A stretch of 64,000 nucleotides of DNA, taken from NCBI RefSeq assembly GCF_902459465.1, contig NC_047064.1, forward strand, positions 22,072,001 through 22,136,000. The letters run 5' to 3'. The notes beneath the pieces are model-generated. The model did not search any database. It was not told where the DNA came from and saw only the letters and a list, made by a program, of their open reading frames with translations. The translations under genes and the position numbers were made by a program. This DNA comes from Asterias rubens. Its lineage: Eukaryota. Below, one piece after another: positions 610 through 37,177 of this stretch (the first letter of the stretch is position 1; each line of letters begins with the position of its first letter).

Positions 610-3600
610 AGCGGAACTGCCTTTTCTTTGGGGGCCTTTACAGAGAAAGAGGACGAGATGAGGAGCCAGGCCTTCCAGGTTGGGGCGAAACTCGGCTGCA
701 GTGCGTCTGAGAGCGTCGCTCTTGTGGACTGCATGAGGGAACAGGACGCCTTGGCACTTGTGGCGGCTTCAATTGAGGTTTGATTTTTTATTTTTTTTTT
801 TTTTATTATTATAAAATGTTTCTTAAACCAAGCATGCCTCATAAGTCAACTTAATTATTCTAGCTCGCCATATTGAGATAACTTCCTTCCCCTAATACAA
901 ATTGAGGATAATTACCGAGACAAACCAGTGAGTGCTCTCCCCTCTCATTCAGAATCAGACAACAAGAAAAAGGTACAGGATCATTACATGAACAGATAAG
1001 CTTCAAATTTTCAACGCTTACATAGCAAAGTTGCCAGAGTCTCATGGACACTGAGGGCGCACAAAGAACAGCTATCGTCCAATCAAAGTCTGCCTCCTTT
1101 AGGCTCAGTGAGTGCTCACATGTTTGTTTTAAAATCAACACACAAGTTTAGAAACACTTTAGGTATACCCCGTTAATGCAGTTCTTCTAACTTGATCTTC
1201 TCAGACAGCCTTCCGAACCAGTGCCGTTAACGACGGAGAATTCCTCTCTGACACCCCGGTCAATCTCTACTCCACCGGGCAGTACAACCACGTCGAGATC
1301 CTCCTGGGGTCAAATGCTGATGAGGGGACATCGTTCCTTCTTGGCGATCCGAAGTTTGCGGAGTATTTCACGTCGCAGGTGGCGCCTGTTCTGAGCAAAG
1401 ATGATTTCGAATTGTATACGAGTCAAAACCTCGTATACGCTTTTGGTAAATATGATTGGATCTCTGTGCATTTAATTTTCTTGTCAAAAACAAAATGAGG
1501 AGTTAAAAATGGTGCACCACTACACAAATCCAGGAGGAGACTTTCTTTTGACTTGGTAGCCATTTTATGATAACCAGTTTGATTTCATTTGGTCCGAGAG
1601 GGACCGATTAAACTCTCACAAAATAGCTCAAACTTTGCGGACTTTAAAACTGACATATGCAACCAACTGCTATGTATACGCACAAGCGATTACTGTGTCC
1701 GGTGTTTATAATGTAAAGTGTGTCTTTAAGGCAGTCGAATTGGACGATCTATCTGCTTGGAAACTATTGATGGCGCACTATATTGTGAACAACAACCTCT
1801 TACGTAACTGGAATTGTGTTCCTTATGTTATCACTATTGATATCAGACTCAATTTGATATGATTTTGTTTAATTACTCAGGTTCAACAGACGCACCGTTT
1901 ATTGCGGATTCAGTCAGAATGCAGTACGTTGACTGGTCTCAGGCCGACAACGAGACTGCCGATTACTTCAACTCCTTTGTAGAATTTGCCGGTGACTTTG
2001 CATTCGTGTGCCCAACTGACAATGTTGCTCGCATTCACGCCCAAGCGGGCGATACTGTGTTTCTGTATCAGATGACGCAAGTCCCTACCGTGTCTATTTA
2101 TAACGTCGGTGGCTTGCAGCCGGGATGGTTAGGAGCGACTCACGCCGAGGATTTACCGTTCGTATTCGGCATTGTGTTCGACCCTGAGTTTGCTCTAGTT
2201 CTGTCTCCCTTTGTGCCTGGTCCAGAGAAGGCACTTTCTGTTAAATTTATGGAATACTGGACAAACTTTGCCAAGACTGGGTAAGAAAAGCTTCTGCACG
2301 TGTGACTTGTACTTTGTATTCAAAAGTATTTAATCCAACCATTTATATTATTTTAGTAAGGCTGAAAAAAGTGTTTGTCATTGTGTCTTCTTTCCCCGTG
2401 TGAAAAGGTACGATTATATCCTTTCAATCTTATAGTCACTATCATCTGTACTTTTCTTTACCACAGAAATCCTGTTACAGCAGACGATATTTGGCCCCAA
2501 TTTACCATCCCAGAGTTGGTATACAAGGAGCTCAACGTTGACATGGCAACAGGACGCGCCCTCAAGAGTGACCAGTGCCATTTCTGGAACACTTATCTGG
2601 TGCAGCTGCAGACCATGTTTGGTAAATGTTTAAATGAAATACCCACCACCACTCCTCAATCAATTCTAGGACTATTGGTAGGGTTGAAAACAATAACAGT
2701 GGCAGACAGAGCTGTGTACAATGAGAGAGTTGAGATATGGAGGAACCAGTTTTCTAAACGTGGTTGCTAAACGCCATGTTTTGGCCCAAAGGCAACACGA
2801 CCCAATGTGGAGTCTCAACTAGCACCCTTAAAGACACTAGACACTATTGGTAAAATTGTCAAACACCACTTCTCACTTGGTGTATCTCAACATATGCATA
2901 ACAAAACAAACCTGTGAAACTATGAGCTTGATTGGTCGCCGGAGTTGCGAGATAACTATGAAAGAAAAAACACCCTTGTCACACGAAGTTGTGTCCTTAA
3001 GATGCTTGATTTCGAGACCTCAAAATTCTAAACCTGAGGTCTCGAAATCAAATTCGTGGTAAATTACTTCTTTCTCGAAAACTATGTCACTTCAGAGGGA
3101 GCCGTTTCTCACAATGTTTTATACCATCAACCTCTCCCCATTACCCCTTACCAAGTGAGGTTTTATGCTGATAATTATTTTGAGTGTCCACTGCCTTTAA
3201 TACCTATGTACATGTATGTGTTATGTTGTTGTTGATTGAATGGCTTTTAATCGCAATTTGTAGCAAATCTCACCATACATAGCTCTGGTGGGCTGATACT
3301 ATAGTGCGCCGCCTGAACTGTAATTCCTCTAACTATTATAGACGATGTGACCTATGTTTACATTCAAACCGCCCTCTGTTGACAAAACACTACGTACGTC
3401 ATGTTTCGCCGGGCACCGAGTTGCGTAGTCACAGTAAGTTTGCGTACACTTTCTAGCTTGCTGCCAAAACACAAAGGTTCAGTTAGTTATATTTATTTAT
3501 ACGGTTTTTATTTCAGCCAACATGGATGATGTAGAACGGGAGTGGAAAGCGTCTTACAGAGCCTGGAAGTACACCGACATGGCCGACTGGAGAGAGCAGT

Positions 3601-3632
3601 TCAACCAGTATAAAGCACTAACTGGCAATTGA
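610..3632 (+). CDS. Carboxyl/cholinesterase-like paralog P1 (5'-partial; last 5 exons) with C-terminal WAT exon
   Basis: GT-AG exons 610-777, 1205-1445, 1881-2280, 2467-2621, 3517-3632 join in frame (1080 nt). Motifs GSNADEG (catalytic Glu), GATHAEDL (catalytic His), YWTNFAKTG. The last exon encodes NMDDVEREWKASYRAWKYTDMADWREQFNQYKALTGN*. Upstream exons lie outside the window. Confidence 0.9.
2828..3200 (-). mobile_element. TTAA-flanked non-autonomous DNA transposon (Kolobok/T2-MITE-like), same family as 58170-58557
   Basis: Begins ttaaagacactagacactattgg and ends gtgtccactgcctttaa. The internal sequence is the reverse complement of the 58170 copy. Confidence 0.7.
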
Positions 3633-4754
3633 TTGCTGAAGAAACTTGCATGTTGACAAAATCATGTGCTTAATATAGACCGCCCTCTTGGACGTCAGAA
3701 AAAGAGGTGAAAATGCCGGCCTATTTGGAACTTCATGATCACTTTACTTTCTGTCCAAATTATTTGTGTTAATTTCCACCTTTTAACAGAACAAACCTCT
3801 TAATACTCCTAAGTCATATTTCACCAATCCGAGTTCAAATGCCTTGACCAATTTATGGTCAAAATTATTTGTATTTTTGTCATAAATGACCCCAAACTTA
3901 CGCCGAATCCTAGTCAAATCTCCCAATGACCATTTCGCACATCTTATACCCGGGTGTGTTTATGTGTTATGGCAGTAGATAGGTGTAAAACAACCACTTA
4001 TCTGTCATACTTCCTAGAAGAAAAAAAATTACCACAAGTAATTGTTTCCTTTACTCATTACCAATCTTCCAATTTATAAACAATTTAAGGAAATATTATA
4101 GTTAATAGGGAAGTTCACTGTACATGTAAAGCATCGACTACTTTGGATTATTTTCTAAATGTTTTATTTAGTTACTGTTTTCCTTCTGGAAAAAAAACCT
4201 TTAGCACAACTTTTACCTTCACTTTTGTGCTATTATTTTAATCTGTTTTTAAAAAATTGAACTTTTAATATAAACAATCTAGTTTGGATACTTTTGTCCG
4301 TACAGTGAAAACATTATGCATGTAATTTGTTGTGTTTTACCCTTACACCTATGTGTGTTATTTAGCACTGTATAATCAGTACTTGCCTGAGTTCTGTGAA
4401 AAATGAAAAAATGATTATGCACTATAACTAAATTAATACCGAATAAATGTTACTGGGCCTATTATTCCAAACGTCAATGTCTTTTTAGTATTTGGTGATT
4501 TCTTTTTTGGGGGATGTGGTACATGCATTAAGTTTGACATACAAACAGTATTAGGGTTCAATGTTGTCAACCGGGCTTCCGTGTACGAGGTTGTTTAACT
4601 AACTCATACCCACGGCTCTCGTAACACCATTTGTAAATGTCAACGTAACATAAAGAATGCACTTTATCTTCGTATAGTCCAGCAGATAGTGCAGAAAATG
4701 TTAATTTATGATAAATAAGAATAATGCTCACACTCTTACATAAATAATGGTCAC

Positions 4755-5260
4755 TTCATCAACCGACTCGAGCTGTGGTACGGTGTTTCTGATCAGTGGA
4801 GTGTTCCCTTAAGCAAGACACTAAACTCATATTGCTTCGAATGGGACGTAAATCTGTTGGTACAGTGTGCTAGTGTGCGTTAAGTTCATTGCAATTTTCT
4901 TTCGTCATCAACACAAAGAGTACAAGTTGATCTGGGGCTGTCAAGGTTACACAAACTGTTAATGGAAGATGTGTACAACCAGACCCCTGCATCGAAAAGA
5001 GAAGGGGTTCACCCTAGTATTCATGGTTTGATTGGTTGCATTGCAAAACAGCACATTGTAAACCATACGATGCTACGCAATGGAAAACAATCTCATACTT
5101 CAAAACTTTAAAATGTACATGTACATGTACATGAATATGTTGCCCCACAATACCTTGCAGGATACGTTATAATAATGGTAGAGTGCACTAAGAGGTCACT
5201 GAGTGACGAATTTGAGCGCTATATTAGAAGCCACTATTACTAGTGGTGCGTTGTGGCCAC
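4755..5260 (+). mobile_element. Probable SINE-like repeat
   Basis: Contains gactcgagctgtggt (also seen at ~34815), a ccttaagcaagacact core motif typical of deuterostome SINEs, and a gagcgctatat...ctattac 3' end. Boundaries are approximate. Confidence 0.35.
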
Positions 5261-5683
5261 TGTAACGAATGATACGGCAACTCTTTCGTCCAATGGCTAA
5301 TGACTAATCAATGACCAATTCAACGGTAACAGTTATTGGTTAACGACCGTGACCCACTTGCCTCATCTTGCATCTTGTTCTGCACACACCTTGTGTGGTA
5401 TTCAAGTATTCAACCAACGTGAACTTTACTCACAAACGTCACCTTACAAAGCCAAAAAAATATATTGAAGGCCGTTCGATCATTCACATGCAAATTAGAG
5501 CGCGACAATGAGTTTCCGAACCTTGGCATGACTCTTCAGTTTTGTGTGGAAACCGGGGCAGCTATTATTGTGTGGCCAACAGGCTAGCTTGTAAAAGCTG
5601 CAGCCAGTTTTGAAGGAAAAGGGTTAAACTTTCACCGACAAGCACTGAATCTGGCCCAGTTTGCAACCCTCAATATACTCAAT

Positions 5684-11210
<5,527 letters not shown>

Positions 11211-12070
11211 TTTTACACCTGGAAATACACAGACATTGCCGACTGGAGAGAGCAGTTCAACCAGTACAAAGCACTAACCGGCAATTGATTGCAGATAAAG
11301 CCGCACAGTAGAAGCCGCATAGTAGAAGCCCCCTTAATAATTTGATGTCCTCAATTGATTCCTCATTAAACTAAACATATTTTAATTGTTTATTAGTAAA
11401 ATCATGTTTACTATTCTTCTTTCGCAAAAAGCCCTGTTACGTCATCAATTGGAGCTCAGTTGACATCAAAGTATTGTCATTTTTACACATGTCAGCAACG
11501 GTAGAAGTGTTTCTAGTTTTTTAAATTTTGAGGTTGGGGCAAACGTTTTGATTGAGTTTTATAATTCAGTAGTGACACATATCACAATTTCATTTAAATT
11601 ATAAACAAACGGATTATTAACAAGTTTAGGTATAGCATTTCAATTTAAAATTGAAGTGATTCAAACTCAAAATTCACCCGATCACGTGGGGCCTGACTAT
11701 TTTTCGGTCAAAATTACCTAGAGGATGTGTCAATAATGACCAACAACTGACGCAGACTTCCAGTCACAATCTCCCTTTTTTCACAAGTTCCTGGGTCAGC
11801 CGGACCCTTGAGTGGGTCAGTCCCATGAGACCAATTCTGACCAGGGAGTCCTTAGTGTACAGACAGTAGGGAGGTGTGAAACAACAACTAGTCCGTCTTG
11901 ATTCTAGAAAAATTCACCACAACTATATCAATTTTACCTATAATGCTCGACGGTAATGTTCCAGTTTATTGATTTGTACATAATGATATAGGCTATTATA
12001 TGTAAAAAGATGAAACAAGAGACCGATACAGAAACTGGAAGTAGGTCAAGACGTGTAACGTTAATGTGAA

Positions 12071-13486: not shown

Positions 13487-16400
13487 ATGGTTGGTCAGGC
13501 TTTTCCCGTGTCGGTGGCCTTTTTCCTTGGGTTGTTGGTGGGCTTTGAAGCTTCCCAACCGCAGGTCACTGTAGAGCAAGGTGCCCTCTTTGGTACCACC
13601 GAGACTTTCCAGGAAGATGAGTTCATCAATATCACCAAGAACATCGATGTCTTCAAGGGGATACCGTTTGCAGAGCCACCCGTTGGAGCGCTGCGATTCA
13701 GGGCACCGGTAGAGAAGAGTAGTTGGGGAAGCGAGGTTTACAACGCCACGTACTTCAGAGCTGCATGCGTTCAGGATTCGGCATACGTCACCCCATATGG
13801 CTTGCAGATGAGTGAAGACTGTCTTCATGTCAATATTTACGCGCCAAATCCAAAACTTGTAAGTCTGTTTCAACACATATCGTCTGTCAAGTCATCAGGA
13901 ATATAACTTAAGTTTTAACAATGACTTTGCAATAAAAATGAGTTATACATTGCGAGAGGAAGTCTCGCGACTATTCGGTTTTTGGGTGTCCGTTGTGCGA
14001 GATTGGAAGTATAGAACCAGAAGCTCTCAATCACAATCCAGATAGTGCGTTGTGCCAGACTTGCCAGGCATTAAGCCAAATAAAACCTGATGAGGCTTTG
14101 CATGCAAGGTGCATGGTCTTACCATGGAGGTATAAATAGAAACGTTCTTTCTCCAACCCTTATTCAAAACCCTAACACAAACCCTCATACATATGAAGTC
14201 CCACTCACCAAACCATTACATCTTTGCATACAACCCCATATAGCACTACCCAGCAACATTGACATACTGTCCCGCCCTCACACTAAAGAATACCCCATCC
14301 TTGTTCACACCTTTGTGAGGTTGTGGCTTCATAAAATAATACGTGTCGTATTATCAACCACGTGTAGGCCTACACTGTCTTAAAATGTATGTTTGGTAAA
14401 CATTTCCGGCTCTGACACTTTCGGGTCAGCTTGACCTGGGTCCAAGTGACCTGACCCACATCCGGTTAAAGCTTGGCCCACAAAATGGTATTAAAAAATT
14501 GGATTCTCACCCAGATTCTGCGTCGGTTTGACCCATTTTCATTTTATTCCCTGGTCATATTTGCCTAAAAATGTGTCAAGCCCCACGGTAACTGAATCCT
14601 GGTCAAATCTGACCTAGGAGTTTTTAGAGTGTACATCTCAAGCCCTTGAGTTGTATGACGTCAGCCCCCCCCCCTCCACCCCCCCCCCCCCCCCCCACCC
14701 CATGGATTTTCAGCTCACCATCAATATATATTTTTTTTCTCGATATCACTATCCCTTTCAAGTCCCTTTCAGCTATTGGTTTTGTTTTCTCTATTTACAG
14801 CCAGAGGGCGCTGCTGTTATGGTTTACATGCATGGTGGCGGTCTTAAAGTTGGTAGCGGATCACTCCCAGATCTCAGAAGCCAACCATTGGTTGCTATAG
14901 GTGACGTCATCTTGGTCACTTTAAACTATCGGCTGAATGTGATTGGCTTCCTAACTACAGGTGAGATCCTCAAGTTTGCTCAAATGGGATTTTCCAGTCT
15001 AAGGGGAGAAGTGGAGAAAATCATAGAGCACGTACGCCTAATTGTCTTTAGATTCACATGTTAAATTCACATGGTCACTATTTCTGTTCTTAAATGAATA
15101 AAAAGAAGAGATGTTTTTAGATTTTTCATAGCGTAAAATCAGGAAATAAGTAGGGCTATTGTTAGTGTGGTTCAAACATTTTATACGCTCACTGATTAAG
15201 TTGACTACCACTCGCACAACAAGACTTTCTTTCTCTACTTTCAGTGAAACGATGCTACAATTAATATTTGATAATTTTCGTTTTTTAATGTTCATCGTCG
15301 GTTTTCAGGTGATGAAGTTTCTCCAGGAAATGCTGGCCTTAAAGATCAAGCTCTTGCCCTCCAGTGGATCAAAAAGAACATAGAAGGTCAGAGTTCAATA
15401 GGTCACTTTAAAGTCGTTTCTTTCAATATGCTTTCGTTGGTTTAGAGGCTTCACTCATTTTGCAAATAAATTTATAAGTCTCCCAGCCTCTTGAAACCAG
15501 AAAAACATATTTTCAGACAACTAAAATTCAAATTTGTTCAATTGTTTTTGTCAGGTCAGCCGTTAAAAATATTTGATAATTATCACAGAAAAGCACCCCA
15601 GCCCCCCCCCAATAAAAATAACAATAAGACATAAAAACATAGGCCTATACATTAATTTTCCCAACAGATATTTTGCGACTTTTCATGAAGAACTTCACCA
15701 CTTCCCAAGCCAAATAGGAACAACTTTAAAGCCTAAATTTATCTAGCCTCTTCGAAGGGTGAAGCACATAACTGCCAGGTTGTGATAACTTGTCATAATT
15801 ACACAATCTATCATTTGCATGACCTACAAAACGGATCAAAAGATTTGGATAATCAGTAGGCACATGAATTTTGGCATATTTAGATGAGTGCACCCTGAGA
15901 ACATTGAGCAAGAGAGTGGTGGATAGAACGCCCGCTATCATCTCAAAATCTCACCTTGTAATGTCTTCCCAATTTCCTTGACAGCTTTCGGTGGTGACAG
16001 TGAACGCATCACCATCTTTGGTGAGAGTGCTGGATCAAATAGCGTCAGCGCTCATCTACTGGCCAAGCAGAATGAGGGATTGTTTCATCAGGCTATAATG
16101 CAGGTACAAACACTGTTCACAGTATCATTCAAAAAAGATTGTAAAATTCGTTCAGAGAAAGTACTTGTCTATTCATATTGCTTCCGGTGAAAAAAACCCA
16201 TAACTGTTTTAATCTACATCTACCGAGTTCTCATCAAAGCCTATTCAGCATATTGATGTGAACATCCATCATAATGGTAAATAATGCAAAAGTGAACTAG
16301 GAACTTGGTATCAACTTAACTGGAATATCATACATTGAGTAAGCTTTCATATTTCTTCCACAGAGCGGAAATGTTCTAGCAGAGTGGTCCTTCCAGGAGA

Positions 16401-18327
16401 ATCAAGATATAATGCGACAGCAAGCGTTTCAACTTGGTGCTAAATTTGGCTGTACGGCTGAGGACACGGCTGGCTTAGTTGAGTGTTTGCGAGAGCAAGA
16501 CCCGACGGCTCTTTTCACCACGTCAGAAGAGGTATTCCCTTGACATTAGACGTTCCCCAATTGTCAAAAGAAGATGTGTTGCATCCAAATTGTCTATATA
16601 CAAACTAGCTAGCAAAGCTATGTTTAAACCTGTGGGCATACGTTAAACTTAATGTTTGTACAATAAGGCCTTTTTGTTGATGATTCTTCAGATAGCGTTT
16701 CTAACCGCCCTGGTTGTTGACGGTGAATACATCGAGGACAAACCTCCCATTATCTACTCCACTGGGCAGTACAACCATGTCGACATCCTTCTTGGTACAA
16801 ATGCTGACGAAGGGGCGTTCATGATGCTCTACGATTCTCTGTTTTTCCCCGAATATTTCCTCAGACCTGATCCTCCTTTTGTGACTAGAGACAACTACGA
16901 GGAGATTATAAACCGGCAAGTCGAACTTTACTACGGTAAGACTCTCCCACACTGTCATGTCATAAAGTAGGGTTAGGTGGGGTCACCTCCTTAGATTGGG
17001 TCACCTCCTTTTAAGGTAGGGTCACCTCCTAAGGTAAGGTCACCTCCTAAGGCAAGGTTACCTCCTTAGGTGGGGTCATATCCTTAGATGGGGTCACCTC
17101 CTGAGGTTGGATCACTTCGCGAGGTTGGATCACATCCAGAGGTGGGATCATTTCCTAGGGTAGGGTCACCTCTAATATTTTTCTGAAATGTATCTTGCAG
17201 GAGCCAATACACAGATAGCAGACGCTATCAGACTGCAGTATGTCGACTGGTCCCAAGCGGACAATGTCAGCGCAGACTATTTTGAAGCAGTGAAGAACTT
17301 TTATACTGACTTTTTCTTTACGAGCTCAACCGACTTAGTTGCTCGTTACCACGCGCAAGGGGGCAACGCCGTCTACATGTACCAGATGACCCACGTCCCT
17401 AGCGCATCTTACTGGGATGTTGGAGTGGGGGTTGGGCCCGGCTGGTTGGGAGCATGTCATGCCGAGGATGTCCTCTATGTCTTCGGGGTTCCATTCATCC
17501 CGGAGGCTGCGGTCAGGCGATCGGAGTTTCAAGATGCGGAGAAAGCACTCTCTGTGAAATTCATGGAGTTCTGGACAAACTTCGTCAATACTGGGTGAGT
17601 GCCAAAAAAGGAGATATAAGCACGCAAAACAATTAAACTTACAAGATTAAGAAGGGCAGCCAAAGCATCATTACAGGTTAACCATTAATGTGCCTGGAAT
17701 CCTCATCATTATTTTTGATGCGGAAATTAATACTAATAGAATTGATCGCTGATGCTGTTTTGACGGTTTTGGGTTGTTGTTCTTTACAGGAACCCAGGAA
17801 CAAAGACTCCTGGCTCTTTGCCAGCCTCTAAGGACGATTACTGGCCTGAGTTTACCATCCCTGGACTCGGATACAAGGAGCTCAATGTTAACATGGCGAC
17901 AGGTCGCGCCCTCAAGAGTAACGAGGCTCATTTCTGGAACTCCTACATAGTACAACTTCAGACCATGCTGGGTAAATATACATACTCAAACACCATAATA
18001 AAAAGGGTCGTGCTACAATTCGTCTGCTTGAAATATTATTCATAAAGGTTATGAGTAAAGCTTGCCCGTACTGGTTTTAAAAAATAAACACTTAATATGA
18101 CATCACCAGGATGCACTTTGGCAAAACTCAACTTTTGTTGTTATTTTGCAGAATATGAAGCTAATGGCATGATATGTAAATGTTTGATTTATTCCTGTTT
18201 AAATGCAGCTGATATGAAGACTAGTGAGCGTGAATGGAGAGAGTCGTATAGCGCCTGGAAGTACACCGACATGGCCGACTGGAGAGAGCAGTTCAACCAG
18301 TACAAATCAGCCACCGGCAACTATTGA
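13487..18327 (+). CDS. Carboxyl/cholinesterase-like paralog P3, secreted, 611 aa, intact WAT exon
   Basis: Exons 13487-13858, 14801-14960, 15309-15386, 15985-16103, 16364-16531, 16692-16935, 17201-17594, 17790-17971, 18209-18327 (1836 nt, in frame). Signal peptide, HGGG, GESAG, GTNADEG, GACHAEDV. Confidence 0.92.
14372..14630. mobile_element. TGACCC-rich MITE-like element (CACT..AAAA / TTTTAGAGTG ends); related fragments at ~6560-6790, ~11690-11860, ~37430-37530
   Basis: TA-flanked cactgtcttaaaa ... tttttagagtg termini and many internal tgacc/ggtca motifs shared with the other fragments. Confidence 0.4.
16968..17172 (+). repeat. Degenerate 18-bp minisatellite (~11 copies) in P3 intron 6
   Basis: Units of the type gggtcacctcctaaggta with many substitutions. 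Confidence 0.8.
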
Positions 18328-23600: not shown

Positions 23601-26140
23601 GGTCACCTCCTAAAGCAGGGTCACCTCCTAAAGCAGGGTCACATCCTAAAGCAGGGTCACATCCTAAAGCAGGGTCACCTCCTAAAGCAAGGTCACCTCC
23701 TAAAGCAGGGTCACCTCCTAAAGCAGGGTCACCTCCTAAAGCAGGGTCACCTCCTAAAGCAGGGTCACCTCCTAAAGCAGGGTCACCTCCTAAAGCAGGG
23801 TCACCTCCTAAAGCAGGGTCACCTCCTAAAGCAGGGTCACCTCCTAAAGCAGGGTCACCTCCTAAAGCAGGGTCACCTCCTAAGGGAGGGTCACATCCTA
23901 AAGCAGGGTCACCTCTTCAAGCAGGGTCACCTCCTAAAGCAGGGTCACCTCCAAAAGCAGGGTCACCTCCTAAGGGAGGGTCATATCCTGAAGTAGGGTC
24001 ACCTTCTGAAAAAGGGTCAGATGTTAAAAGTATAGTGTCATCTCCTTAGGAAGGGCAAATTCTAAGATAGGGTCACCTCCTAATATAATGTTCATAACCT
24101 CAGTAAGGGCACCTAGTTAGGTAGGGTCGCTTACCCATTACTATGTTTATGGCACTTGACAATGTTTCCCCATGCAAACCGTTACTTCACAATTATTTCA
24201 TACAGCTTACCTATTGAGACACATGGAGATTGCACTTTCTGTTTTTATTTAGTTTTGATCAGAAAAAAAGGGAAACCTTCTACAATACTCTCGAGAGAAA
24301 AAAAAGGTATCTTTCATGCCCTTGAATGGTACAATGCCACTGTTTTTGTAGGCAGAGGTTACTTGGTCTATAAAGATTCTTTTTTCAAGAGAATCCAAAC
24401 AAATTAATATCTTGCAGGAGCCAATACACAGATAGCAGACGCTATCAGACTGCAGTATGTCGACTGGTCTCAAGCCGACAATGCCAGCGCAGACTATTTT
24501 AAAGCAGTGAAGAACTTTTATACTGACTTTTTATTTGCGAGCTCAACCGACTTAGTTGCTCGCTACCACGCCCAGGGGGGTAATGCCGTCTTCATGTACC
24601 AGATGACCCACGTCACTAGCGTGTCTTACAGGGATGTTGCCGTGGGAGTCGGGCCTGGCTGGATGGGGGCAGGTCATGCCGAGGATGTACTCTATGTCTT
24701 CGGGGTTCCATTCATCCCGGAGGCTGCGATCAGGCGATCGGAGTTGCAAGATGCGGAGAAAGCACTCTCTGTGAAATTTATGGAGTTTTGGACAAACTTC
24801 GCCAATACTGGGTAAGTGCAGCTTAAGTGAGTAAATGAAATGAAGATAGCTCCTGGCCTGAAATTTGTGCTATTGAGTCTAAGAAGGCTATCAGATGGTT
24901 CAGATCGTTTGAAAGCTTTACAAAAAATAACACATGATAACAAATATACTGTTGGAAACAATACGATGGTGTACGCGAGTGTGTGGAATCCGATGGTGCT
25001 GTACTCCATGATATTAGACCCTGGGTGGATTTCACAAAGAGTTAGGACTAGTCTTATCTCGACTTAGGACGAGTTACTCGTGCTAACTTAAGACTACCTA
25101 TACACTTTTTAAATCTCTTAGGACTAGTCCTATATAAAGTTAGGACTTGTCCTAACTCTTTGTTTTGCTAACCGGTATAGTGTTAGTGCGCAAGCGCGAT
25201 GTATACAATTAATTACAAAGTTCTAGAAAAAAAATTCAATCGGTCCTGGCCGAATGCCATAGCTCTGCTTATAAGAACAACCAATATTATTATTAGCTCA
25301 GCCAAAAAAAATTACGTTTTAACAGAATAACGTTAAGTTTGATCATTGACGGTTGTGATCTTTCTGCTTTATACAGAAACCCAGGAACAAAGACTCCTGG
25401 CTCTTCACCGGCCTCTGAGGACGATTACTGGCCCGAGTTTACCATTCCTGGACTCGGATACAAGGAGCTCAATGTTACCATGGCGACAGGTCGCGCCCTC
25501 AAGAGTAACGAGGCTCATTTCTGGAACTCCTACGTAGTACAGCTTCAGACCATGCTGGGTAAATATCCACACTCAAACGCAGAGACGTGCTTTTCTTCGG
25601 GAGTGAAGAATAGTTTCGAGAGTTTAAGATCTCAAAATTATTGTTCATGAATTATACAATAATAATAATGGGGTCTTAAACAGCACACGTATCCACCAAG
25701 GATGTATTCAAGAATCAAAGAGAAACACATTCTTCTGAAGACGAGCAGAGTACACTGTTCGAAACGTCGAGACAAACCGGCTCTTTTCAGAGCCAACACT
25801 CACACATGGTTGTACCCGTAAGTTTACTATAACTTATAGTTTCTTCTTAGAAACACTTTTGTTTACAACAAAATCATAATGTTTACAAGGTGACTACAGC
25901 GTATTGACCACCCACTGCCAGAAACACTGCTGCAAACTGATAAGTGTATCTGGGTTATTTGACGTACATTACACAACACACAACACAAAAATTTTTAACA
26001 TTTGATTTATTCTAAATGCAGCTAATATGGAGGCTAGTGAGCGTGAATGGAGAGATTCGTATAGCGCCTGGAAGTACACCGACATGGCCGACTGGAGAGA
26101 GCAGTTCAACCAGTATAAAGCACAGACCGGCAACTATTAA
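20649..26140 (+). CDS. Carboxyl/cholinesterase-like paralog P4 (recent duplicate of P3), 614 aa, GTSAG nucleophile elbow
   Basis: Exons 20649-21029, 21148-21307, 21754-21831, 22240-22358, 22698-22865, 23084-23327, 24418-24811, 25377-25558, 26022-26140 (1845 nt, in frame). HGGG, GTSAG, GTNADEG, GAGHAEDV, WAT last exon. Confidence 0.92.
22565..22663 (+). repeat. 33-bp tandem repeat x3 in P4 intron 4
   Basis: tgaactgggaactgggtctcatcacgggaatat at 22565, 22598 and 22631. The equivalent P3 intron has a single diverged copy (~16294-16330). Confidence 0.85.
23355..24080 (+). repeat. 18-bp minisatellite (cctaaagcagggtcacct), ~36-40 copies, in P4 intron 6
   Basis: Seen directly; it accounts for the PKAGSP and LKQGHL ORF repeats. 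Confidence 0.95.
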
Positions 26141-27645: not shown

Positions 27646-27854
27646 GTATTATGGTTTCAGCGTCAGGAATCGCTTCATACATTGGCTATATACATGGATG
27701 TGTGGTACATTATTGTAGGTCTATAGATTAAACCCATAATACAACGATGGTCTTAGAACAGTAGAAATAAGACCAGACCAGTCCCCATGGCTTTGTCCAT
27801 CATACCTGAAAAGTGACATTATGTGTGCCCTAAAGTCGGCAGAGGGCGCTATAA

Positions 27855-29400
27855 TTTCAAATATGCGCACATCACTCCTCTGTTAAAATCAAATAAGCTT
27901 GATCCAGAGGACTTGAACAGTTATCGACCTATCGCTCACTTGAAGTTTCTCGGAAAACTGCTTGAACGGCTTGTGGTCTCTCAGCTTCAGGAATATCTGA
28001 TGATTAATAACTTGTTTGCTAGTGCTCAATCTGCATATAGACCAAATCATAGTTGTGAAACTGCTATTGTTAGAGTCGTTAATGACATTTTGATGGCCCT
28101 TGATAGTGGTAATGATGCCATTTTGCTGCTTCTTGACTATTCAGGTGCTTTTGACACTATCAGTCAGCCTATTTTATTTTCACGCTTGGAGAAAAGATAT
28201 GGGATAGGCGGAAATGCACTGAAACTACTCACTTCTTACCTTAAAAACAGAAGTCACTCTGTAGTTATTGGAAGCTCTAAATCTCATATTTATTCATCCA
28301 CCCATGGTGTCCCTCATGGCCCTGTCTTAGGCCCTTTGGCATTCACTTTGTATTCAGCACCACTGCAGGACATTATTTCTCATCACAATTTGAAATGTAT
28401 GATGTATGCAAATGATACTCAAGTTTATGTATTCATTGAAGATGGTAAACAATATGATGCGGTTCAAAAACTACAGGCTTGTGTTTTAGATATAAAATAT
28501 TGGTCTGTTCAGAATGATCTCAAACTTAATGCAGATAAAACTGAGGTTCTTCACTTTACCAGTAAATTCAGACAGAGTCATCAACTCGAGTCTTTCATCC
28601 TTGATGACATGGCTGTCATTACAGTGGCAGATTCTGCCAGAAATCTTGGCGTCAAACTTGATAACCATCTTACAATGCATGCTTATGTTAATGATACCTG
28701 TAGAGCTGCTTCATCTGCTCTTCATAAAATTGGTACAATACGGTCATTCTTAAACAAGAAATCAACAGAAAGACTCGTCCATGCACAATTGTAATGTTTC
28801 GCATTGATTTTTGTAACAGCATTTTGTATGGTCTTCATGATGTACATATTAACAAGCTTCAGAGAATCCCAAACTCTGCTGCTAGATTGGTGACACGTAC
28901 TCAAAAGCGTGAACACATTTCTCCTATTTTGCATGATTTACATTGGCTTCCGATAAAACACCGTATTCATCATAAGATACTTTCATTAACTTTCTTATGT
29001 TTGCAAGGTTTAGGCCCAACTTATCTCCAGGAACTCATCCAAAAATATCATCCAGTTCGCAATCTCCGCTCTAAATCCAGGTCTCTCTTAGTTTGTCCCT
29101 CGACTTTTACTAAATTTTATGGGGCCAGAGCTTTTGCGGCAGCAGCAGCAGAATTATGGAATAGTCTTCCGGACACCATAAAACAAGCTCAAACAGTGAA
29201 TTTATTTAAGACAAAGTTAAAAACACATTTATTTTTTCAATAGCCTTCAGTGCTTCTTTCTGTATCAACTAAATTTTGCTTTTGTATTTACTTCACATCT
29301 CTATTAACTTTTACTTCTCTTTTGTTTTCTTCTCAAAGCGCATAGGGACTTCTCTGTGATTGTGATATGCGCTCTACAAAAATGGTTCATTATTATAATT
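27855..29400 (+). mobile_element. 5'-truncated, inactivated CR1/L2-group LINE (RT domain and 3' end)
   Basis: YRPIAHL.FLGKLLER, QSAYRPNHSCETA, LLDYSGAFDTI, PHGPVLGP (from PQGS) and YAND (from YADD). Frameshift near 28790, followed by LHWLPI...R.F...A.ELWNSLP...FKTKLKTHLF. Confidence 0.9.
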
Positions 29401-29931: not shown

Positions 29932-29993
29932 TCCACTGGCGGACTATAACTACAGATCTAAGGACACTAACTGACTTTGAGAATTAGTGAAAA

Positions 29994-32900
29994 ATGGCCG
30001 CGTTGGTTCAACTTTCTTTGCTCGTGTTTGGTGTTTTGGGAGTGGAGTGCCAGCCCCGTGTTAGCCTGGGCGGTCTCGGTACTCTACTCGGGGAAACGGT
30101 CCACTATCTCCGGGAGGGCTACCCGGCCAAAGACGTCTACATCGATGCATTCCGTGGGATCCCGTTTGCCGAGAAACCCGTCCGGTTCTCGAAGCCGCGA
30201 GCCAAGGAATGGTCGGGGGAGTTCAATGCGACAACCTTCAAGGAGAGGTGCCCGCAAGCGCTTACAGAGGGAACCAGTGAAGATTGCCTGTACCTTAATG
30301 TGTGGGCGCCAAACCCAAAGGTAAATGACGTGTACTGTTTACCATAATTATTTTGAAAAAGGGCATCAGTAATGATAGAAAACAACAGATCAAGTTTTGA
30401 TAAAACAGAATAACTCAGTTTTTGTGCTAGAACCGTGGACATTGGATGTGCACATTTTGCACAAATACAAAAAATGTCAAAGGCATTAAAACTGCCTTTG
30501 CCATTTTCAAAAATTACTTTTAGACCTTATAATCCCCTATGTTTTTATTGATTAATTTGTTTTGGGTAAAAGGACGCAATTGGAGAGGTGTGTTGGAATG
30601 TGGACAAGAGTTGCACATTAATTTATTTTACTTCGACGCGCAATTGGAGAGGTGTGTTGGAATGTGGACAAGAGTTGCACATTAATTTATTTTACTTCGA
30701 CGCGCAGATTTTGATTGCCCCGATCGAGATTTGTTTCAAATGCTTTTCATTGTATCCATTTAGTATAACGCATTTGTCCCAAGAGAAAATGTTGGTAAAA
30801 TAATAACATTTTGAAAATAGAATTTTGAAACTTTTTGATTAATATTCTACCAATGTTTTTAAAACAATAAAACAAATCTCGAATGGCCCATTAGTCAAAA
30901 ATCTTTCTCATGACTGACTCTCATCGCAGACACATTGCCTGTCGTACTCTTGATGTCAATAAATTTGATAACTAAATGTTAAAGTCATCTAAGATGGGCG
31001 AACGTTAGCCATTCAAAGAGGAATGTGGGATATGTGACGTCATGTCGATCCAACCAAACGTGATTGCGAACAGTTCTCAAAAAGTGATTTGTTGAATAAT
31101 GTACACAATAATAATTCTTTTGTTTCCTCCCTTGTTGCAGTGTTTGTAGACTTGATTCAAGACCCGTTCTCGTGCGAGAGGTTCCTAAGCATATCTGCCG
31201 TCAAAATGTAGCTATGTGGTTCCGAGAATGGCGCGGCACAGGTTAAGCGATGGGACTGAAAATAAAAGGACTCCCACGGGATTGGGACTTGAGTCAAGTC
31301 TACAATGTTTGAAGTTGTGTTACCTAAAGATGTTAAGGACATAAACCTATAAGCATCCTGCATTATCAATGATTTACCAAATAGAACCATAATGAACCAT
31401 ACAATGATTGCTTGAAGGCTTAGGTTTGATTTATAATCAAAGATTGCTATCATTTAGAGTGTAGGTTCACATGACATGTTAAAAAGGGGGATGTCAAATT
31501 GATAACACAAACTTAAGGGGTGGTGCAAACTTTTTGTTGGTGTTGGTTTTTGTTTGTTTTTAGGGGAGAGCATTCATTCAAGGTTTTAGGGTTTGTTTTT
31601 CGAATCCAAGATAATAATAGATTACTTAAATAATTATTATGTTTTGTTATGTTTCACTCATCACAAATCATCCAATTTCCATTTTTGCTGAGATCGTGTG
31701 CACCATCTATACTTGTTTTGATCGCTGCGATATAAACAAGCAACTCTGTTTTTGTTGGGAGTGAAGCATCCCCTTTCTTTACTTTAACAAATATTTTAAA
31801 CGAAACTTTTTCTCTGGACTATTTCCGATTTTAAACTTAACAACCAGTGAGCTAGGAATCAATCTGAAAGGTTTTAGACAGCGATTATTATTTCCTCCGA
31901 GGCTACAGATTATAAAGTTGATAACATTTTGTTTCTGATTTCAAAACCTACCTAATTGATACCCAACTACCTCTCTGCTTTGACTGTTACATAATGGTAG
32001 ATAGATCCTATGATATCAGGTCATTTGCATAGATATTGAAGGAAATAGATCCTCAGTAAATAAATGAGGCAAGAATGAAGGCTGAACATCGATTCAAAAA
32101 ACCCAAACCCTCGATGTCAGGAAAAGTTAATTGTTATAACACTCTATGTGTGGTACTGTCATCTGACAGCACCCTCCTATTCAATTTCCTCTTTGGGGGC
32201 ACGCACAACGGGTACAAAATCCCCACGCCATCACCATTTATATAGATTCTTATATTATAATAAAAACTAAATTATTTATTTGTTTGTCCTATTCTTGTGA
32301 AATGCGAGTATCATCCAATGCCTGTGATAAAACTTATAAGGATACCTGACAATAACTGATTGGTTAATATCCTCCATGGTCAAGTTATGAGAGTCAACAT
32401 TTTGGAGAAGGAGCGGGGGAATGGTGGGGGAATGAAGAACACAAAATAATTGAACTTGACTTGCATTCCAACACATCCGTAACAAAAACACCAATAAATA
32501 TATAGTAACGAATGTTCACGCTTAGATTTTCCAAGTTCTAACTTGTTTTTTGTGTGATTTTTGTAGCCTTCCAAAGCAGCCGTTATGGTCTTCATCCACG
32601 GTGGTGGATATGTGTCAGGGGCAGGCGATTACAAAGGTTACCACGGCACACAGCTCGTGGCGTATCAAGACGTCGTTGTTGTGACTTGTAACTACAGACT
32701 AGGCAGCTTCGGCTTTCTCACCACAGGTAAAAACAACCACCACACTCAAAACAACTTAAGTTTGTGAGGATTTTTTTAAATTCAAGAATATTACGTTTAG
32801 ACTTTATTTTAGTTCGGTAATGAGCTTCTCACAGACTGGTGACCATGTCCAATGCCGAACTGCCTTTTTATACTTTCTTTGTGATCATAGAGGGCGTTGT

Positions 32901-35900
32901 AGGCGTGGTTTGGACTAGTATAATTGGTAATTAGTTCTGGGGATGGTACCCCGCTTTAAAGCCTGAACATCTGACGTCACACTTCGACGATTCTGATTAA
33001 CGCCAGAGAGAGGCCTCAAGCTTCGGTCAATCCCCGTCCATAATCACCTTTTATCTAGATTCATATGCGGACGACCAAAAGTGCAGCTGCGAAACGTCAC
33101 TTCGGACCAATCAAACACGTAGAAAGCTTACGTCACTGCACGTTTATTCAATTAAATCATTGTATCCAATGAACTCACTGGTTTTGAACAGTTGTCTTTA
33201 TCCTTAACGCTTGCAGGTGATCCAGAGTTACCAGGGAACTATGGGCTATGGGACCAGCGCGAAGCACTGAAATGGGTGAAGGCACATATAACTGGTAGGT
33301 CAGAGGTAGTCATGTCTATGTTCAAACGCCGTTTCTCTTGTCCCTAATAAGAAGTACTGAGCAGAGTGTGGGTTCGAGTCCCAGTCGTGGCATTTGCGTC
33401 CTTGTGCAAGATACTTTACCATATGCCTTGGTCCTTCGATTGAGACCTTATAGCTCCCGTGTACTTAGGATTGGTAAAATAACCCAGAACACTTATCGTG
33501 GAAGAGTACGATGCATTCCAGTGTTTCTGCTTCACATAGCACGCACCCTTGTTTACTAATTCTATTGCAACTTCGATGAACACTTGTAATGAGTCAAAAT
33601 TGTCACAGGTTTGTTATGTTATGCATAATGTTTGGATACACCAAGTGAGAACACTGGTCTTTTACTGATAATTACCAAAGGTGTCCAGTGCCTTGAAGCA
33701 CCCTCTCAAAGTTGGCATTACACGCCCTGTGGCGACCAGCTTGAATTATTTCATATAAGCAGTGGGTACTAAATATAAATTTAATTACTTTTAATGAGGT
33801 CCCAGAATTATTGTTGAATGTTAACTAATGCATATGCAGTGTTGACACTGTTATTTGTTTTTATTCTGGTTGTAGCTTTTGGAGGTGACTCTGACAGGAT
33901 AACCATTTTCGGACAGAGTGCTGGTGCTGGGTCGGTCAGTCTTCTGACACTGGCGGAACCAGCCTGGGAGTTCTTCGACAGAGCAATCGTACAGGTATGG
34001 AACACACCCCACATCGAGCTCATTAGCTCTTTAATCAAAATCAGTTTCTTTAAATCTACAAGTATGCCCCCTATTATATTTCAATAATAACGTTTTTTAG
34101 TATACTTTTCCTTACGTCCTGCTCTCCTCGTACTGGAATCACAAGTTAAGTATTCCATTATTTTTCCCAGCTGCAAATCCCAGAGATAGTTGAACGTTCT
34201 TGATATCCTAGGCTGGATCATTTCATTTTTTTTCAGATGGGAAGTCAGTTCACAGGTTGTTTATACCGGTATAAAAACCAATCCCATAATACAATTTCTG
34301 TGCATCTTTATCCGATGTCTCTCCGGGCAATCCCGGTGGTCTTGTTAGTAAGACATTGCTCTAGCATTGCAAAGGTCGTGGGTTCGAATCCCACCGAGAT
34401 GCCTGTGATTTGTTATTTTCACAGAGCTCGGGAAAGTGCTGAGTGTACAGTGTTAAACACACATAAACCAAAATTAATAAGCTTACGTTTTGTTGTTGAT
34501 TTTTACGCAGAGTGGACAAGCTTTGTGTCCGTGGTCTTTGGAGTTGGACAAGGCAAAGGCTAGGCAGGATGCCTTCGAAGTCGGTAGGAATGCCGGGTGT
34601 GGGGAGATTGAGACCAGTGCAGAGCTTGCTGAGTGTCTACGGGTTGTTGACACCGAAAGACTCAATGCGGCGACAACTGCGGTGAGAAATTCGGATGCTG
34701 AAGTTTGATGTTTTGATTGTCGGTGTTGTTTTTCATTTCAATACAGTCTCGTGGTATTTAAAGATAACCACTCATACATAGTGCGTGACGTGGCTGAGCG
34801 AATAAGAGCACCGGACTCGAGCTCTGTGGTAGTCTCCCTAACAACACAGTCACAACCCACGAAGATATGCAACACATTGAAGTGATAAATATTGCAAATA
34901 AGACTTACCTGCAATAAGACTTATTTAATAATAATCTTATTCTTTTTCCCCAGGTCCTTCTGAAAACGAGGAATGTCATTCCATTCGTTCCGACAGTTGA
35001 CGGTGAACTCATTACAGACAATCCCCTCAACCTCTTTACCAACGGCAAGTTCAAACAGTGCGATATCATGACGGGAGCGATGAGGGACGAGGGGACCATC
35101 TTAGCTGCCAGAGCTTTTCTCAGTCAAATCAACACGACTCACCCAATGGTTACCCGTGAAGAGTTTGAATCCAAACTGAGCACGTATGTCTACAGATTTA
35201 CTAATGATATGATCCTGGACTCCATCAAGCAAGAATATTACAACTGGGCAGATGTGGAGGATCCTGATACTAATTTCTTCTGGAGTTTTGTCCGGATCAC
35301 CACAGATGAGGCATTTGTGTGCCCGATAGAGGCTGGTGCACGAGCCTATACCAATGCTGGTATGAACACCTACCTGTATCATATGACGTACGTGCCGTCA
35401 GTTCGTAACTTCGGTGAGAATATTCCATGGGTTGATGTCGTCGCTCACTCTGACGAGATCACGTTTGTATTTGGGCATGGGTTGTTCGTGGAAAACCCAG
35501 TCAACATAACGGCAGTAGAGATGAATATGACGCTGGATTTAATGAGATATTGGACTAATTTTGCCAAAACTGGGTAAGAAATCATGAGGTAATTTCATCA
35601 AACCTGGCTCACTTTCATAAAGCTGTTAAGCAGGAAATACGGCTCGGCAAATTTATCTGCTAAGCAAAATTTATTTTTGGGGCGGCACCAATTTACAATG
35701 TAAACTTATCAGAATTTGGGCTGGTACAGTTACTGCTAAGCAATACGAACTTGTCTGTGTTTATCGATTTGTTGTGCTTACAGGCTTTATGAAATTGGGC
35801 GAGCCCCGTACATTACTAAAGGTTTTCTGCTGACGGGTCGCCCCTCTTTTTAAATAGGAATCATTTTTGACGAATCACTTTTTATAATAACATGAGTCAA

Positions 35901-37177
35901 AAGGTTTTTAGTAACTACTTGCCAGTGCCGAGCCTCCATACACTCGTTCCAAAGAATTCTAAAAGAAAATCTAATTTAAAGAAACCTAATACCTAAAAGT
36001 AGCTGAGCTGACTTACGGTCTAAGCAAAAGGATGGCTTGGGGATTATTATGATTAACCCAAAACAAAATTCTGGCTGTTAAAACCGTTTCCACAAAGAAC
36101 AGACATAATCTGTGCTAAGCATGCAAAATTGATTCAAATAGGCCCACATCACGTGCCATCTCTCTTGCTTCTTGTCACTATTCTAGATTTCGTGTCGGCC
36201 TATAAAATTGTACTTTTTAAGTGTGCAAGTTCTGGGAGAGCACATTTTTTTATGACATTTTTTGTTTTACTTCTGCCTTTCCCTTAACGTCCCCTGCTTG
36301 TTATAATTATTGTTTTGTCAAAAATCTTACAAAAATCATATCAAAAATGTATTAGGACTGAATATCCTGTTGCAATGGTACAAGATTGGATTCAAACAAT
36401 ATTGTCCACAGAAGTTGAACGGCAGGGAAATAATAATATACAACTGATCCTTCGTCTGTTTTACTTCTTTTTTGGTAGAAATCCGAACCTTGAGTTTGCC
36501 AGCCAGTCTGAGAACGAAGAAGACGAGACAAACTGGGCAAAGTTTTCGATTCCTGAGCTGGCGTATAAGGATATTGCACCCTCTATGAAGGACAGTAGGG
36601 CATTGAGGAGTGCTCAGTGTCAATTCTGGAACGAATATCTACCGAAACTCAACTACTTTATAGGTAAGACTACACCCAATGGCTGTTGGAGATTTAAAAT
36701 CCCATGTTGAATGTTTTTTGGCTATTACATTAATACTAATAACATTGTTGGGAAAATTAAAACTGCATGGTCAAAAGCACCCCCCCCCCTCAAAAAAAAA
36801 ATTAAAATAATAATAATAATACATCCAAATTGGAAAACACACCATCTCATAACTAAAACATTGTATTATTTAAAAAGTCACAACTTTTAGAAAATAAGTT
36901 AGTTAATAAAAATCTTAATAATTCAGAATCTTGAACCCATACACTTGAGATAAAGAAAAGTTGTCGAAGATGGCTCATGGCTTTCAGGTAGAAGGGTATT
37001 ACTCTATAACGCCATAGCTTAATGCAAGCCTTGATTTATTTATTTGAAGACGAAACAGACGAAGAAGAGTGGCAATGGCGGGAAGAATTCTACGGATGGA
37101 AGTCGCAGGAGATACCAGACTGGCGCCAAGCGTATGCAGAGTATATGGAGGTCGTTGGAAACGATGTCAATTCTTGA
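29994..37177 (+). CDS. Carboxyl/cholinesterase-like paralog P5 (divergent member), ~595 aa, GQSAG, WAT exon
   Basis: Exons 29994-30320, 32567-32726, 33217-33294, 33876-33994, 34511-34681, 34954-35573, 36479-36663, 37050 (or 37059)-37177. Signal peptide [63 protein letters not shown], then [28 protein letters not shown]. Confidence 0.92.
30576..30703 (+). repeat. 64-bp tandem duplication in P5 intron 1
   Basis: gcaattggagaggtgtgttggaatgtggacaagagttgcacattaatttattttacttcgacgc at 30576 and 30640. Confidence 0.85.
33335..33560 (+). mobile_element. tRNA-derived SINE-like fragment
   Basis: B-box-like gggttcgagtccc followed by ccttgtgcaagatacttta (SINE core-like). Confidence 0.45.
34335..34470 (+). 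mobile_element. tRNA-derived SINE head (not a tRNA gene)
   Basis: ggtggtcttgttagtaagac...ggtcgtgggttcgaatcccacc with A/B-box-like motifs but no complete cloverleaf. Confidence 0.45.

Follow-up and report, generated by a model that had tools for sequence, protein, structure and literature searches.

Reviews regard the WAT tail as characteristic of acetyl- and butyrylcholinesterase. Vertebrate butyrylcholinesterase builds its tetramer around polyproline peptides that it scavenges, not on a dedicated anchor, and such tetramers form on assorted polyproline peptides (PMC8518539). This enzyme, which hydrolyses choline esters, retains the gorge aromatics along with Trp82, Asp70 and a 28-residue omega loop, whereas the starfish genes analysed here lack the loop, the Trp and the Asp and still carry the tail. 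We put the probability at roughly 0.7 that these genes, P1 to P5, encode secreted non-choline esterases of an echinoderm family, with predicted polyproline tetramers built by their tails.

A tandem array of esterase genes in Asterias rubens

Five cholinesterase-like genes matched by PF00135 lie on one strand (+) at positions 610-37177 of the 64-kb stretch of DNA that was analysed (the window; all positions below without a C3 prefix are within it). They are the last five in a tandem row of ~12 genes at C3:21,997,826-22,109,177. Gene models spliced with a starfish homologue as guide have GT-AG introns throughout and keep the frame, and they align to NCBI models from A. amurensis with no gaps or nearly none. 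Together with the PF00135 matches, these models bear out an earlier note on this DNA, which had claimed five tandem esterase paralogs with tail exons.

P1 (610..3632) is represented by its 3' part, as the gene starts upstream at C3:22069951. Its exons in the window lie at 610-777, 1205-1445, 1881-2280, 2467-2621 and 3517-3632, the last being the WAT exon including the stop, and its identity with A. amurensis P0167 is 96%. P2 (5684..11288; 597 aa) has nine exons, at 5684-6043, 6847-7006, 7263-7340, 7650-7768, 8294-8461, 9019-9259, 10010-10406, 10588-10742 and 11173-11288 (WAT exon). Each of its introns is seen in spliced contigs of one to four runs (X5, X1, X6, X9), RNA contigs place the end of exon 1 at 6043 and the start of exon 2 at 6847, and the alignment to A. 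amurensis P0166 is gapless at 94.7% identity. P3 (13487..18327; 611 aa) also has nine exons, at 13487-13858, 14801-14960, 15309-15386, 15985-16103, 16364-16531, 16692-16935, 17201-17594, 17790-17971 and 18209-18327 (WAT exon), with 97.7% identity to A. amurensis P0169 over 611 aa. P4 (20649..26140; 614 aa), 88% identical to P3, has its nine exons at 20649-21029, 21148-21307, 21754-21831, 22240-22358, 22698-22865, 23084-23327, 24418-24811, 25377-25558 and 26022-26140 (WAT exon). The divergent paralogue P5 (29994..37177; 598 aa) has eight, at 29994-30329 (alternative end 30320), 32567-32726, 33217-33294, 33876-33994, 34511-34681, 34954-35573, 36479-36663 and 37050-37177 (WAT exon). P5 exon 6 is matched by PF00135, and 93% of its sampled words are present in run X6 and 100% in X19-X21.

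The reference assembly places an in-frame TAA at 11208-11210, inside the P2 tail exon. Position 11209 is, however, a C in four transcript data sets from as many studies (runs X5, X1, X6 and X9), giving TCA, a Ser codon, and spliced transcript contigs from three studies carry the P2 junction 10742|11173 onto the tail exon. A natural tail-less variant of P2 was therefore rejected, since the TAA is missing from all four transcript sets.

Catalytic domains, the lost choline site and the echinoderm family

The columns of the catalytic triad hold Ser, Glu and His in P2 to P5, while P1 shows the Glu and His within the window. HGGG, with the GGG of the oxyanion hole, is found in P2 to P5. P2 and P3 have the nucleophile motif GESAG, P4 has GTSAG and P5 has GQSAG; the catalytic acid lies in NADEG or RDEG, and the His is present in 5/5 genes. 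The description of these esterases as catalytically intact thus stands for the triad and HGGG of P2 to P5, with the qualification that P4 and P5 have altered nucleophile motifs and that only Glu and His of P1 fall in the window. Further changes affect the active site of P1 (G122A, W236G) and P4 (W236S), both cysteines of the third disulfide are gone in P3 and P4, and an upstream paralogue has a dead triad. Activity may be altered or low in P4, with GTSAG and W236S, and in P5, with GQSAG. Hydrophobic N-termini point to putative signal peptides in the array esterases.

The first Cys loop spans 13 to 19 residues and contains no Trp, compared with the 28-residue omega loop of cholinesterases, and its sequences are as the earlier note gave them. 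The P2 remnant (5957-6007) has 17 residues, and the corresponding loops lie at 13766-13822 in P3, 20937-20993 in P4 and 30249-30287 in P5, all on the + strand. W86 (human numbering; W84 in Torpedo) and D74 are missing in all five array genes, and both are kept in 27/27 true cholinesterases of the alignment. The gorge and acyl-pocket set (Y124, Y337, F338, Y341, W439) is mostly replaced in P1, P2, P4 and P5; P3 retains F337, Y341, W439, W236 and F297, without Y124. That these are non-choline esterases is supported insofar as they are not the animal's cholinesterases, with W86, D74, Y124 and most of the aromatics missing. Judging from the residues present, efficient turnover of choline esters is unlikely without W86, though weak activity is possible.

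The true cholinesterases of A. rubens are found elsewhere: chromosome C14 carries three genes with the full choline-binding set. These have an EMWN loop, and their PF08674 scores (38.1, 32.9 and 31.9 bits) are the best WAT scores in the genome. In phylogenetic trees, which the earlier note had proposed, the array genes belong to an ambulacrarian clade (96-98 SH-aLRT) that is distinct from that of the true cholinesterases (98-99 SH-aLRT), and vertebrate CES form a clade of their own (support 100). The array is thereby set apart from both cholinesterases and CES, but the branching order among true cholinesterases, vertebrate CES, neuroligin and the array clade has supports of only 32-62, at which the trees do not discriminate between a single inheritance of the tail and its loss in CES.

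Relatives combining the short Trp-less loop with a WAT tail occur in all five echinoderm classes, in Acanthaster, Patiria, Strongylocentrotus, Lytechinus, Diadema, Amphiura, Antedon, Anneissia, Apostichopus and Holothuria. They share 40-98% identity with the window genes and group with them in one clade. P1 to P5 are members of this existing family, already annotated automatically by NCBI as "cholinesterase 1-like". Because of that name, the array genes could be mistaken for the source of the cholinesterase activity that serves as a pollution biomarker in echinoderms. Our literature search found no paper on these genes of echinoderms. An in silico survey by Johnson and Moore from 2012 reportedly covered the sea-urchin set, and its abstract is said to report that cholinesterases and carboxylesterases are not sharply divided in the echinoderm genomes studied.

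WAT tail exons and their predicted assembly

A six-frame regular-expression search for the tail pattern W-x3-F/Y-x2-W-x7-W-x3-F/Y-x2-Y was run over the whole 64 kb. It returned exactly five matches, at 3543, 11199, 18235, 26048 and 37076, all on the + strand and one behind each esterase gene, so that the three Trp and three Phe/Tyr are present in 5/5 tails. The tail exons lie at 3517..3632 (P1), 11173..11288 (P2), 18209..18327 (P3), 26022..26140 (P4) and 37050..37177 (P5, the most divergent tail). Each of the five genes has a phase-1 last intron (G|CC, G|CA, G|CT and similar), which agrees with the separate phase-1 last exon of the earlier note. In a true cholinesterase gene, as in the array genes, this intron precedes the first Trp by nine codons, and the TG|NP phase-2 intron and this phase-1 tail intron have the same positions and phases in both.

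Profile matches are uneven. Against a PF08674 (AChE_tetra) cut-off of 25 bits, the P1 tail scores 32.8, P3 23.1, P4 22.4 and P5 10.1, and 1VZJ is the top PDB match for the tails of P3 (E = 0.11) and P5 (E = 0.033). The P5 tail keeps the aromatic pattern and recurs, with a Cys added, in the Amphiura relative P0216. Vertebrate tails are spaced W-x6-W, which raised the idea that W-x7-W marks a non-working WAT; this was rejected, because true cholinesterases of A. rubens and amphioxus have the same spacing, which is common to the array tails and to echinoderm and amphioxus cholinesterases. On sequence evidence, the array tails are homologous to the cholinesterase WAT exon.

The tails end in ...KALTGN, ...KSATGNY, ...KAQTGNY or ...VVGNDVNS, and neither a Cys nor a KDEL-like signal was found in the tail ends of P1 to P5. 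The absence of an ER-retention tail is thus confirmed, although some echinoderm relatives have the tail plus an RDEL or KEEL ending. The missing C-terminal Cys, also reported earlier, is true of P1 to P5 but is confined to starfish within the family: all starfish members lack it, most members from urchins, brittle stars, crinoids and sea cucumbers keep it, and true cholinesterases carry it after the helix.

Array tails are held by purifying selection. Tail dN/dS is 0.08-0.48 in 26 of 27 computable paralogue pairs, 25 of them at a dS of ~0.25-2; the young pair P3/P4 has a tail dN/dS of 0.99 at very low dS. The six aromatic positions that point towards the PRAD in the solved complex are all invariant in eight tails of the P1-P4 type, at dS ~1.

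A complex of four P3 tails with one polyproline stretch (4:1), the partner being taken arbitrarily from an ORF that is probably non-coding, was predicted with a score of 0.65, versus 0.02 for the best control. Runs share at least 60% of contacts and the partner has a pLDDT of at least 57; in calibration, the mark was reached by 51/78 solved complexes and by 2/108 mismatched pairs. The predicted contacts with polyproline fall on W9, Y13, W16, W24, F28 and Y31 of the P3 tail. This four-WAT model, suggested in the earlier note, places the conserved aromatics on polyproline, with a score that may stem from the prediction model having learnt the solved structures 1VZJ and the butyrylcholinesterase tetramer. 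A whole-genome PF16101 search gave no PRiMA homologue above the cut-off (best 28 bits versus 38.6), and its best match is a bare proline run in a short, probably non-coding ORF. The PRAD pattern of Cys-Cys followed by five prolines had 884 matches in genome DNA versus 509 in the reversed control; this search was uninformative because poly-C tracts swamped the matches.

In the reading we prefer, the enzymes, which keep the COesterase fold and the Ser-Glu-His triad, with the omega loop cut from 28 to 13-19 residues, would hydrolyse esters other than acetylcholine. They might serve in digestion, in detoxification or in the breakdown of signals. Four tails would wrap one polyproline-II helix to give soluble tetramers resembling plasma butyrylcholinesterase, on polyproline peptides from many proteins and with no dedicated anchor. 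Since starfish members have no Cys after the helix, assembly would be non-covalent, and no disulfide would join it to an anchor. Most paralogues have almost the same tail core, and co-expressed paralogues could therefore mix, conceivably including the triad-dead upstream copy. A bolder extension, which we hold to be doubtful, is that WAT and polyproline form a mix-and-match system in echinoderms, with subunits of mixed specificity and dead subunits, maybe with a PRAD protein unrelated to ColQ and PRiMA; the module would then be older and broader than its role at the synapse.

Catalysis could be the same and the tail be kept for another job, as an amphiphilic signal for quality control, retention or degradation or as a contact to membrane or matrix, rather than as an organiser of tetramers around polyproline. 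In vertebrates the T peptide also marks unassembled subunits for retention and for degradation, which it promotes, so selection on the tail need not mean tetramers. The Cys by which tetramers and anchors are normally locked is lost in all starfish members, which points the same way, as do the lack of a PRiMA-like partner in the whole-genome PF16101 search and the KEEL and RDEL endings beside the tail in some relatives, which hint at an ER role. We nevertheless consider such a job unlikely, because the six PRAD-facing aromatics have stayed invariant at a dS of ~1, the predicted complex puts exactly those aromatics on polyproline, and butyrylcholinesterase itself needs no dedicated partner.

Less probable still is that some copies are decaying duplicates. 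P2 with its reference TAA, P4 (GTSAG, W236S) and P1 (G122A, W236G) would be the candidates, and the P3/P4 tail dN/dS of 0.99 at very low dS fits such decay; yet every reading frame is intact, P2 is spliced and expressed with its stop missing from four transcript sets, and A. amurensis orthologues are 95-98% identical with no frame breaks. We give marginally less credence, and very little in all, to the array genes being working cholinesterases that use other aromatics for choline binding and contribute to the tissue cholinesterase activity of echinoderms. The best solved relatives of a P3 orthologue are AChE and BChE, at ~310 bits and with an alignment that extends through the BChE tail, P3 keeps five of the aromatics, and the NCBI name is cholinesterase-like. 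Against this, the W86 loop is deleted and W86 and D74 are gone from 5/5 genes, three other genes in the genome hold the full set, and the array lies outside the true cholinesterase clade.

Comparison with known esterases

In this large family, found across the echinoderm classes, the tail is kept under selection and the choline site is lost. If the tails tetramerise, WAT and polyproline would be a general means of oligomerisation, older or wider in use than synaptic anchoring. The purpose of soluble tetramers could then be studied in echinoderms as a natural system, with the starfish-specific Cys loss and the dead paralogue as natural experiments.

Vertebrate CES, which is ER-resident, and CEL share with the array genes the fold, the triad and the absence of the choline-binding Trp, and the first Cys loop of CEL is about as short as that of P2. 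Neither has a WAT tail, unlike the array genes, and neither is among the best 60 solved matches; CES ends in HXEL, whereas the array tails end in TGN, TGNY or DVNS. Among echinoderm "cholinesterase 1-like" proteins from outside the starfish, the tail Cys is mostly kept and some end in RDEL or KEEL. The A. rubens C14 cholinesterases (NCBI "acetylcholinesterase-like", P0259 and P0285) share the tail pattern and the last two introns with the array. Their catalytic domain is encoded in one large exon, where the array genes use seven or six, and they belong to a different clade. They have the complete choline-binding set and, behind the helix, a Cys, neither of which the array genes have. The tail of vertebrate butyrylcholinesterase has the W-x6-W spacing and an inter-subunit disulfide Cys, in contrast to the W-x7-W and absent Cys of the array tails. 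What the soluble G4 form of that enzyme shares with the array is a secreted serine hydrolase of the COesterase fold with the same triad, and a WAT helix on its own last exon behind a short penultimate exon.

Gene models and expression of the array

When the window was searched in six frames for the cholinesterase-tail aromatic pattern, there were five matches, all on the + strand (positions 3543, 11199, 18235, 26048, and 37076), and a COesterase-like exon set lies a few hundred bases upstream of every one. Spliced models of these five tandem esterase genes, P1 to P5 (610-37177), were made against a starfish homologue; P2, P3, and P4 have nine exons each and P5 has eight, and P1 is truncated by the window start. 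All introns are GT-AG, all frames are open, and in each of the five genes the last intron is in phase 1, nine codons ahead of the tail's first Trp. The pattern matches and GT-AG models thus confirm what the earlier note had observed, namely, five esterase genes with a phase-1 last exon encoding a WAT-type tetramerization helix. Aligned end to end with Asterias amurensis NCBI proteins, P1 scores 96%, P2 94.7%, and P3 97.7%. Among paralogues, identity is 88% for P3/P4, 77% for P1/P2, ~60% between P1-2 and P3-4, and ~40% between P5 and the rest. The five genes form the 3' end of ~12 same-strand array genes on contig NC_047064.1 (C3:21,997,826-22,109,177). An ORF from another part of this A. rubens genome has 100% identity to a protein of that species.

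The window has ~40% G+C and one N run of 178 bases (62011-62188). Between P4 and P5 lies a reverse-transcriptase ORF of a non-LTR-type element (27823-29243, + strand; PF00078, 90.7 bits). The gene next after the array encodes a selenium-binding protein, of which one exon is at 43725-44063 (+ strand; PF05694 SBP56, 69.3 bits); downstream of the array there are also a retroelement-like fragment (49713-50186, - strand) and a 32-bp tandem repeat (51734-53124, ~44 copies, 97% identity), the source of long spurious - strand ORFs. Intron 6 of P4 contains an 18-bp minisatellite of 36 copies (23367-24019), which is outside the spliced model and, read on from exon 6, would give PKAGSP repeats. A second COesterase cluster, distant from the array (C8:5,338,051-5,465,988), has at least 15 genes with unbroken open frames of ~500-590 codons; in the one gene read there, the motifs are of the GQSAG type and the acid is Asp.

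Contigs from four public sequencing runs, representing four studies, cover the P2 exons, with no depth in several intronic bins. They have joints at all predicted introns, the joint onto the tail exon (10742|11173) being found in three runs. These joints and empty bins indicate that the contigs are transcript-derived and that P2 is expressed and spliced as modeled. The assembly places an in-frame TAA within the P2 tail exon (11208-11210), whereas all four runs have C rather than A at position 11209, giving TCA (Ser) as in the A. amurensis orthologue; the stop is either an allele private to the reference individual or an assembly error. For P5 exon 6, 93% of sampled words occur in run X6, the source of spliced P2 contigs, and 100% occur in three further runs.

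Catalytic residues and the choline site

The esterase exons match PF00135, and the classical cholinesterase residue columns were taken from an alignment of 77 proteins. All of P2 to P5 have Ser203, Glu334, and His447, and the part of P1 inside the window shows the Glu and His. At 13-19 residues, versus 28, the first Cys loop is so short that the Trp-bearing segment is missing, and Trp86 is absent from all five genes. Asp74 and Tyr124 are likewise substituted in all five, and Tyr337, Phe338, Tyr341, and Trp439 are substituted in most; at Glu202, P4 has Thr and P5 has Gln. The choline-binding set is kept in 27/27 true cholinesterases of the alignment, which come from vertebrates, amphioxus, hemichordates, echinoderms, and arthropods. 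The short, Trp-less loop of the earlier note is therefore borne out, and its reading of these proteins as non-choline esterases is judged right given the loss of Trp86, Asp74, and Tyr124. As far as sequence can tell, the array genes would encode non-cholinergic esterases with an inherited cholinesterase tail.

The third cholinesterase disulfide has lost both Cys residues in P3 (17201-17594, 17790-17971) and P4 (24418-24811, 25377-25558), through Cys409 to Ser and Cys529 to Ala, and the same paired loss is seen in the A. amurensis orthologue. Other substitutions were noted along the array. Acyl-pocket Trp236 is Gly in P1 (window 610-777 and C3:22070541), where the oxyanion motif is IHGGAF, and Ser in P4 (22240-22358, 22698-22865), which has GTSAG. 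An upstream member (C3:22023582-22030123) has its nucleophile motif replaced by GQGTG and its catalytic His by Tyr, but its WAT exon is intact.

The tetramerization tail

With PF08674 (AChE_tetra; cutoff, 25 bits), P1 scores 32.8, P3 23.1, P4 22.4, and P5 10.1 bits. When the P3 and P5 tails were compared to all solved structures, the top match was 1VZJ, the AChE tetramerization domain, albeit with an E value of only 0.03-0.1 for these 40-residue queries; BChE and AChE tails followed, aligned at the corresponding position. The alignment of full-length human BChE with the full-length P3 orthologue continues through the tail. In a true cholinesterase gene of A. rubens, the catalytic exon ends in ...NFARTG in phase 2 and is followed by a ~185-bp exon and then by the tail exon with a phase 1 start; both final introns are at identical places and phases in the array genes. 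Taken together, these comparisons argue that the array tail is a true WAT homologue. The gap of seven residues between the second and third Trp was considered as a sign of a defective tail, and this is ruled out by the same spacing in A. rubens cholinesterases and amphioxus ACHE; vertebrates have six, and W-x7-W is the invertebrate-deuterostome form.

The array tail is under constraint. Eight P1-P4-type tails gave 27 computable pairs, of which 26 have a dN/dS of 0.08-0.48 (dS, ~0.25-2 in 25) and the young pair P3/P4 has a value of 0.99. All six aromatic positions are invariant across the eight, and four of them (array gene g, P1, P3, and P4) share the identical stretch WKYTDMADWREQFNQYK.

The earlier note had also raised a complex of four tails with a proline-rich partner (PRAD). 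A complex was predicted from four P3 tails and a 34-residue segment, 11 residues of which are proline, encoded in another part of the genome; it scored 0.65, compared to 0.02 for the best control, with at least 60% contact agreement among three runs and a partner pLDDT of at least 57. In the calibration of the prediction tool, the mark used was reached by 51/78 solved complexes and 2/108 mismatched pairs, and this 4:1 job was flagged as unlike that calibration. Each tail is predicted to contact the proline run through W9, Y13, W16, W24, F28, and Y31. Because the solved WAT/PRAD complex has this geometry, the model may simply be reproducing that known structure, and the prediction is evidence of likeness, not of binding. 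No PRiMA homologue was found in the A. rubens genome, and a genome search with a PRAD-like motif pattern gave no usable signal. Plasma BChE assembles into tetramers on polyproline peptides that it scavenges from a variety of proteins (PMC8518539), so tetramers need no dedicated anchor. Tail-driven tetramers of the array esterases are plausible; mixed tetramers of paralogues are speculative.

An echinoderm family beside true cholinesterases

In two quick-search maximum-likelihood trees with SH-aLRT support values, all true cholinesterases form one clade (98-99) and vertebrate CES another (100). The array genes fall outside both, in a distinct ambulacrarian clade (96-98) along with hemichordate esterases that have HDEL-type tails; the branching order of these large groups is not settled by the two trees. 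P1 to P4 are within a starfish subclade (100), and P5 clusters with genes of Patiria and Amphiura (99). Relatives combining the short Trp-less loop with a WAT tail are found in starfish, sea urchins, brittle stars, crinoids, and sea cucumbers. The 150 best representatives from a library of 1.84 billion proteins included no such relative from outside echinoderms except one metagenomic protein. This esterase family is already annotated in public databases, and its sea-urchin members were reportedly surveyed in silico by Johnson and Moore in 2012.

The missing tail Cys, from which noncovalent assembly had been proposed, is real and specific to the starfish lineage: it is absent in all starfish members, kept in most members from other echinoderm classes, and present in starfish true cholinesterases. 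Some database proteins of this family join a WAT-like tetramerization helix with an ER-retention-type ending (KEEL, RDEL, or RNEL), namely, P0163, P0165, and P0168 of Acanthaster and P0182, P0192, P0197, and P0201 of Amphiura.

With an omega-loop segment as the genome query, the top three matches were all on contig C14, at ~1.17, 10.08, and 5.27 Mb. Each of these genes has one open exon of ~510-540 codons, whose 28-residue loop includes EMWN; next come a ~185-bp exon and a Cys-containing WAT exon. The genome's three best PF08674 matches (38.1, 32.9, and 31.9 bits) lie one downstream of each. NCBI names them acetylcholinesterase-like, and they share 46-50% identity with vertebrate AChE and BChE. 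Since these three genes have both the EMWN loop and WAT, the array genes are not the sole cholinergic-enzyme candidates of A. rubens and, judged by sequence, are poor ones. The long-standing equation of WAT with cholinesterase is visibly contradicted by a large, selected, and easily testable echinoderm family. The two kinds of gene also differ in structure: the catalytic domain is spread over seven or six exons in the array genes, whereas it is contained in one exon in the C14 cholinesterases.
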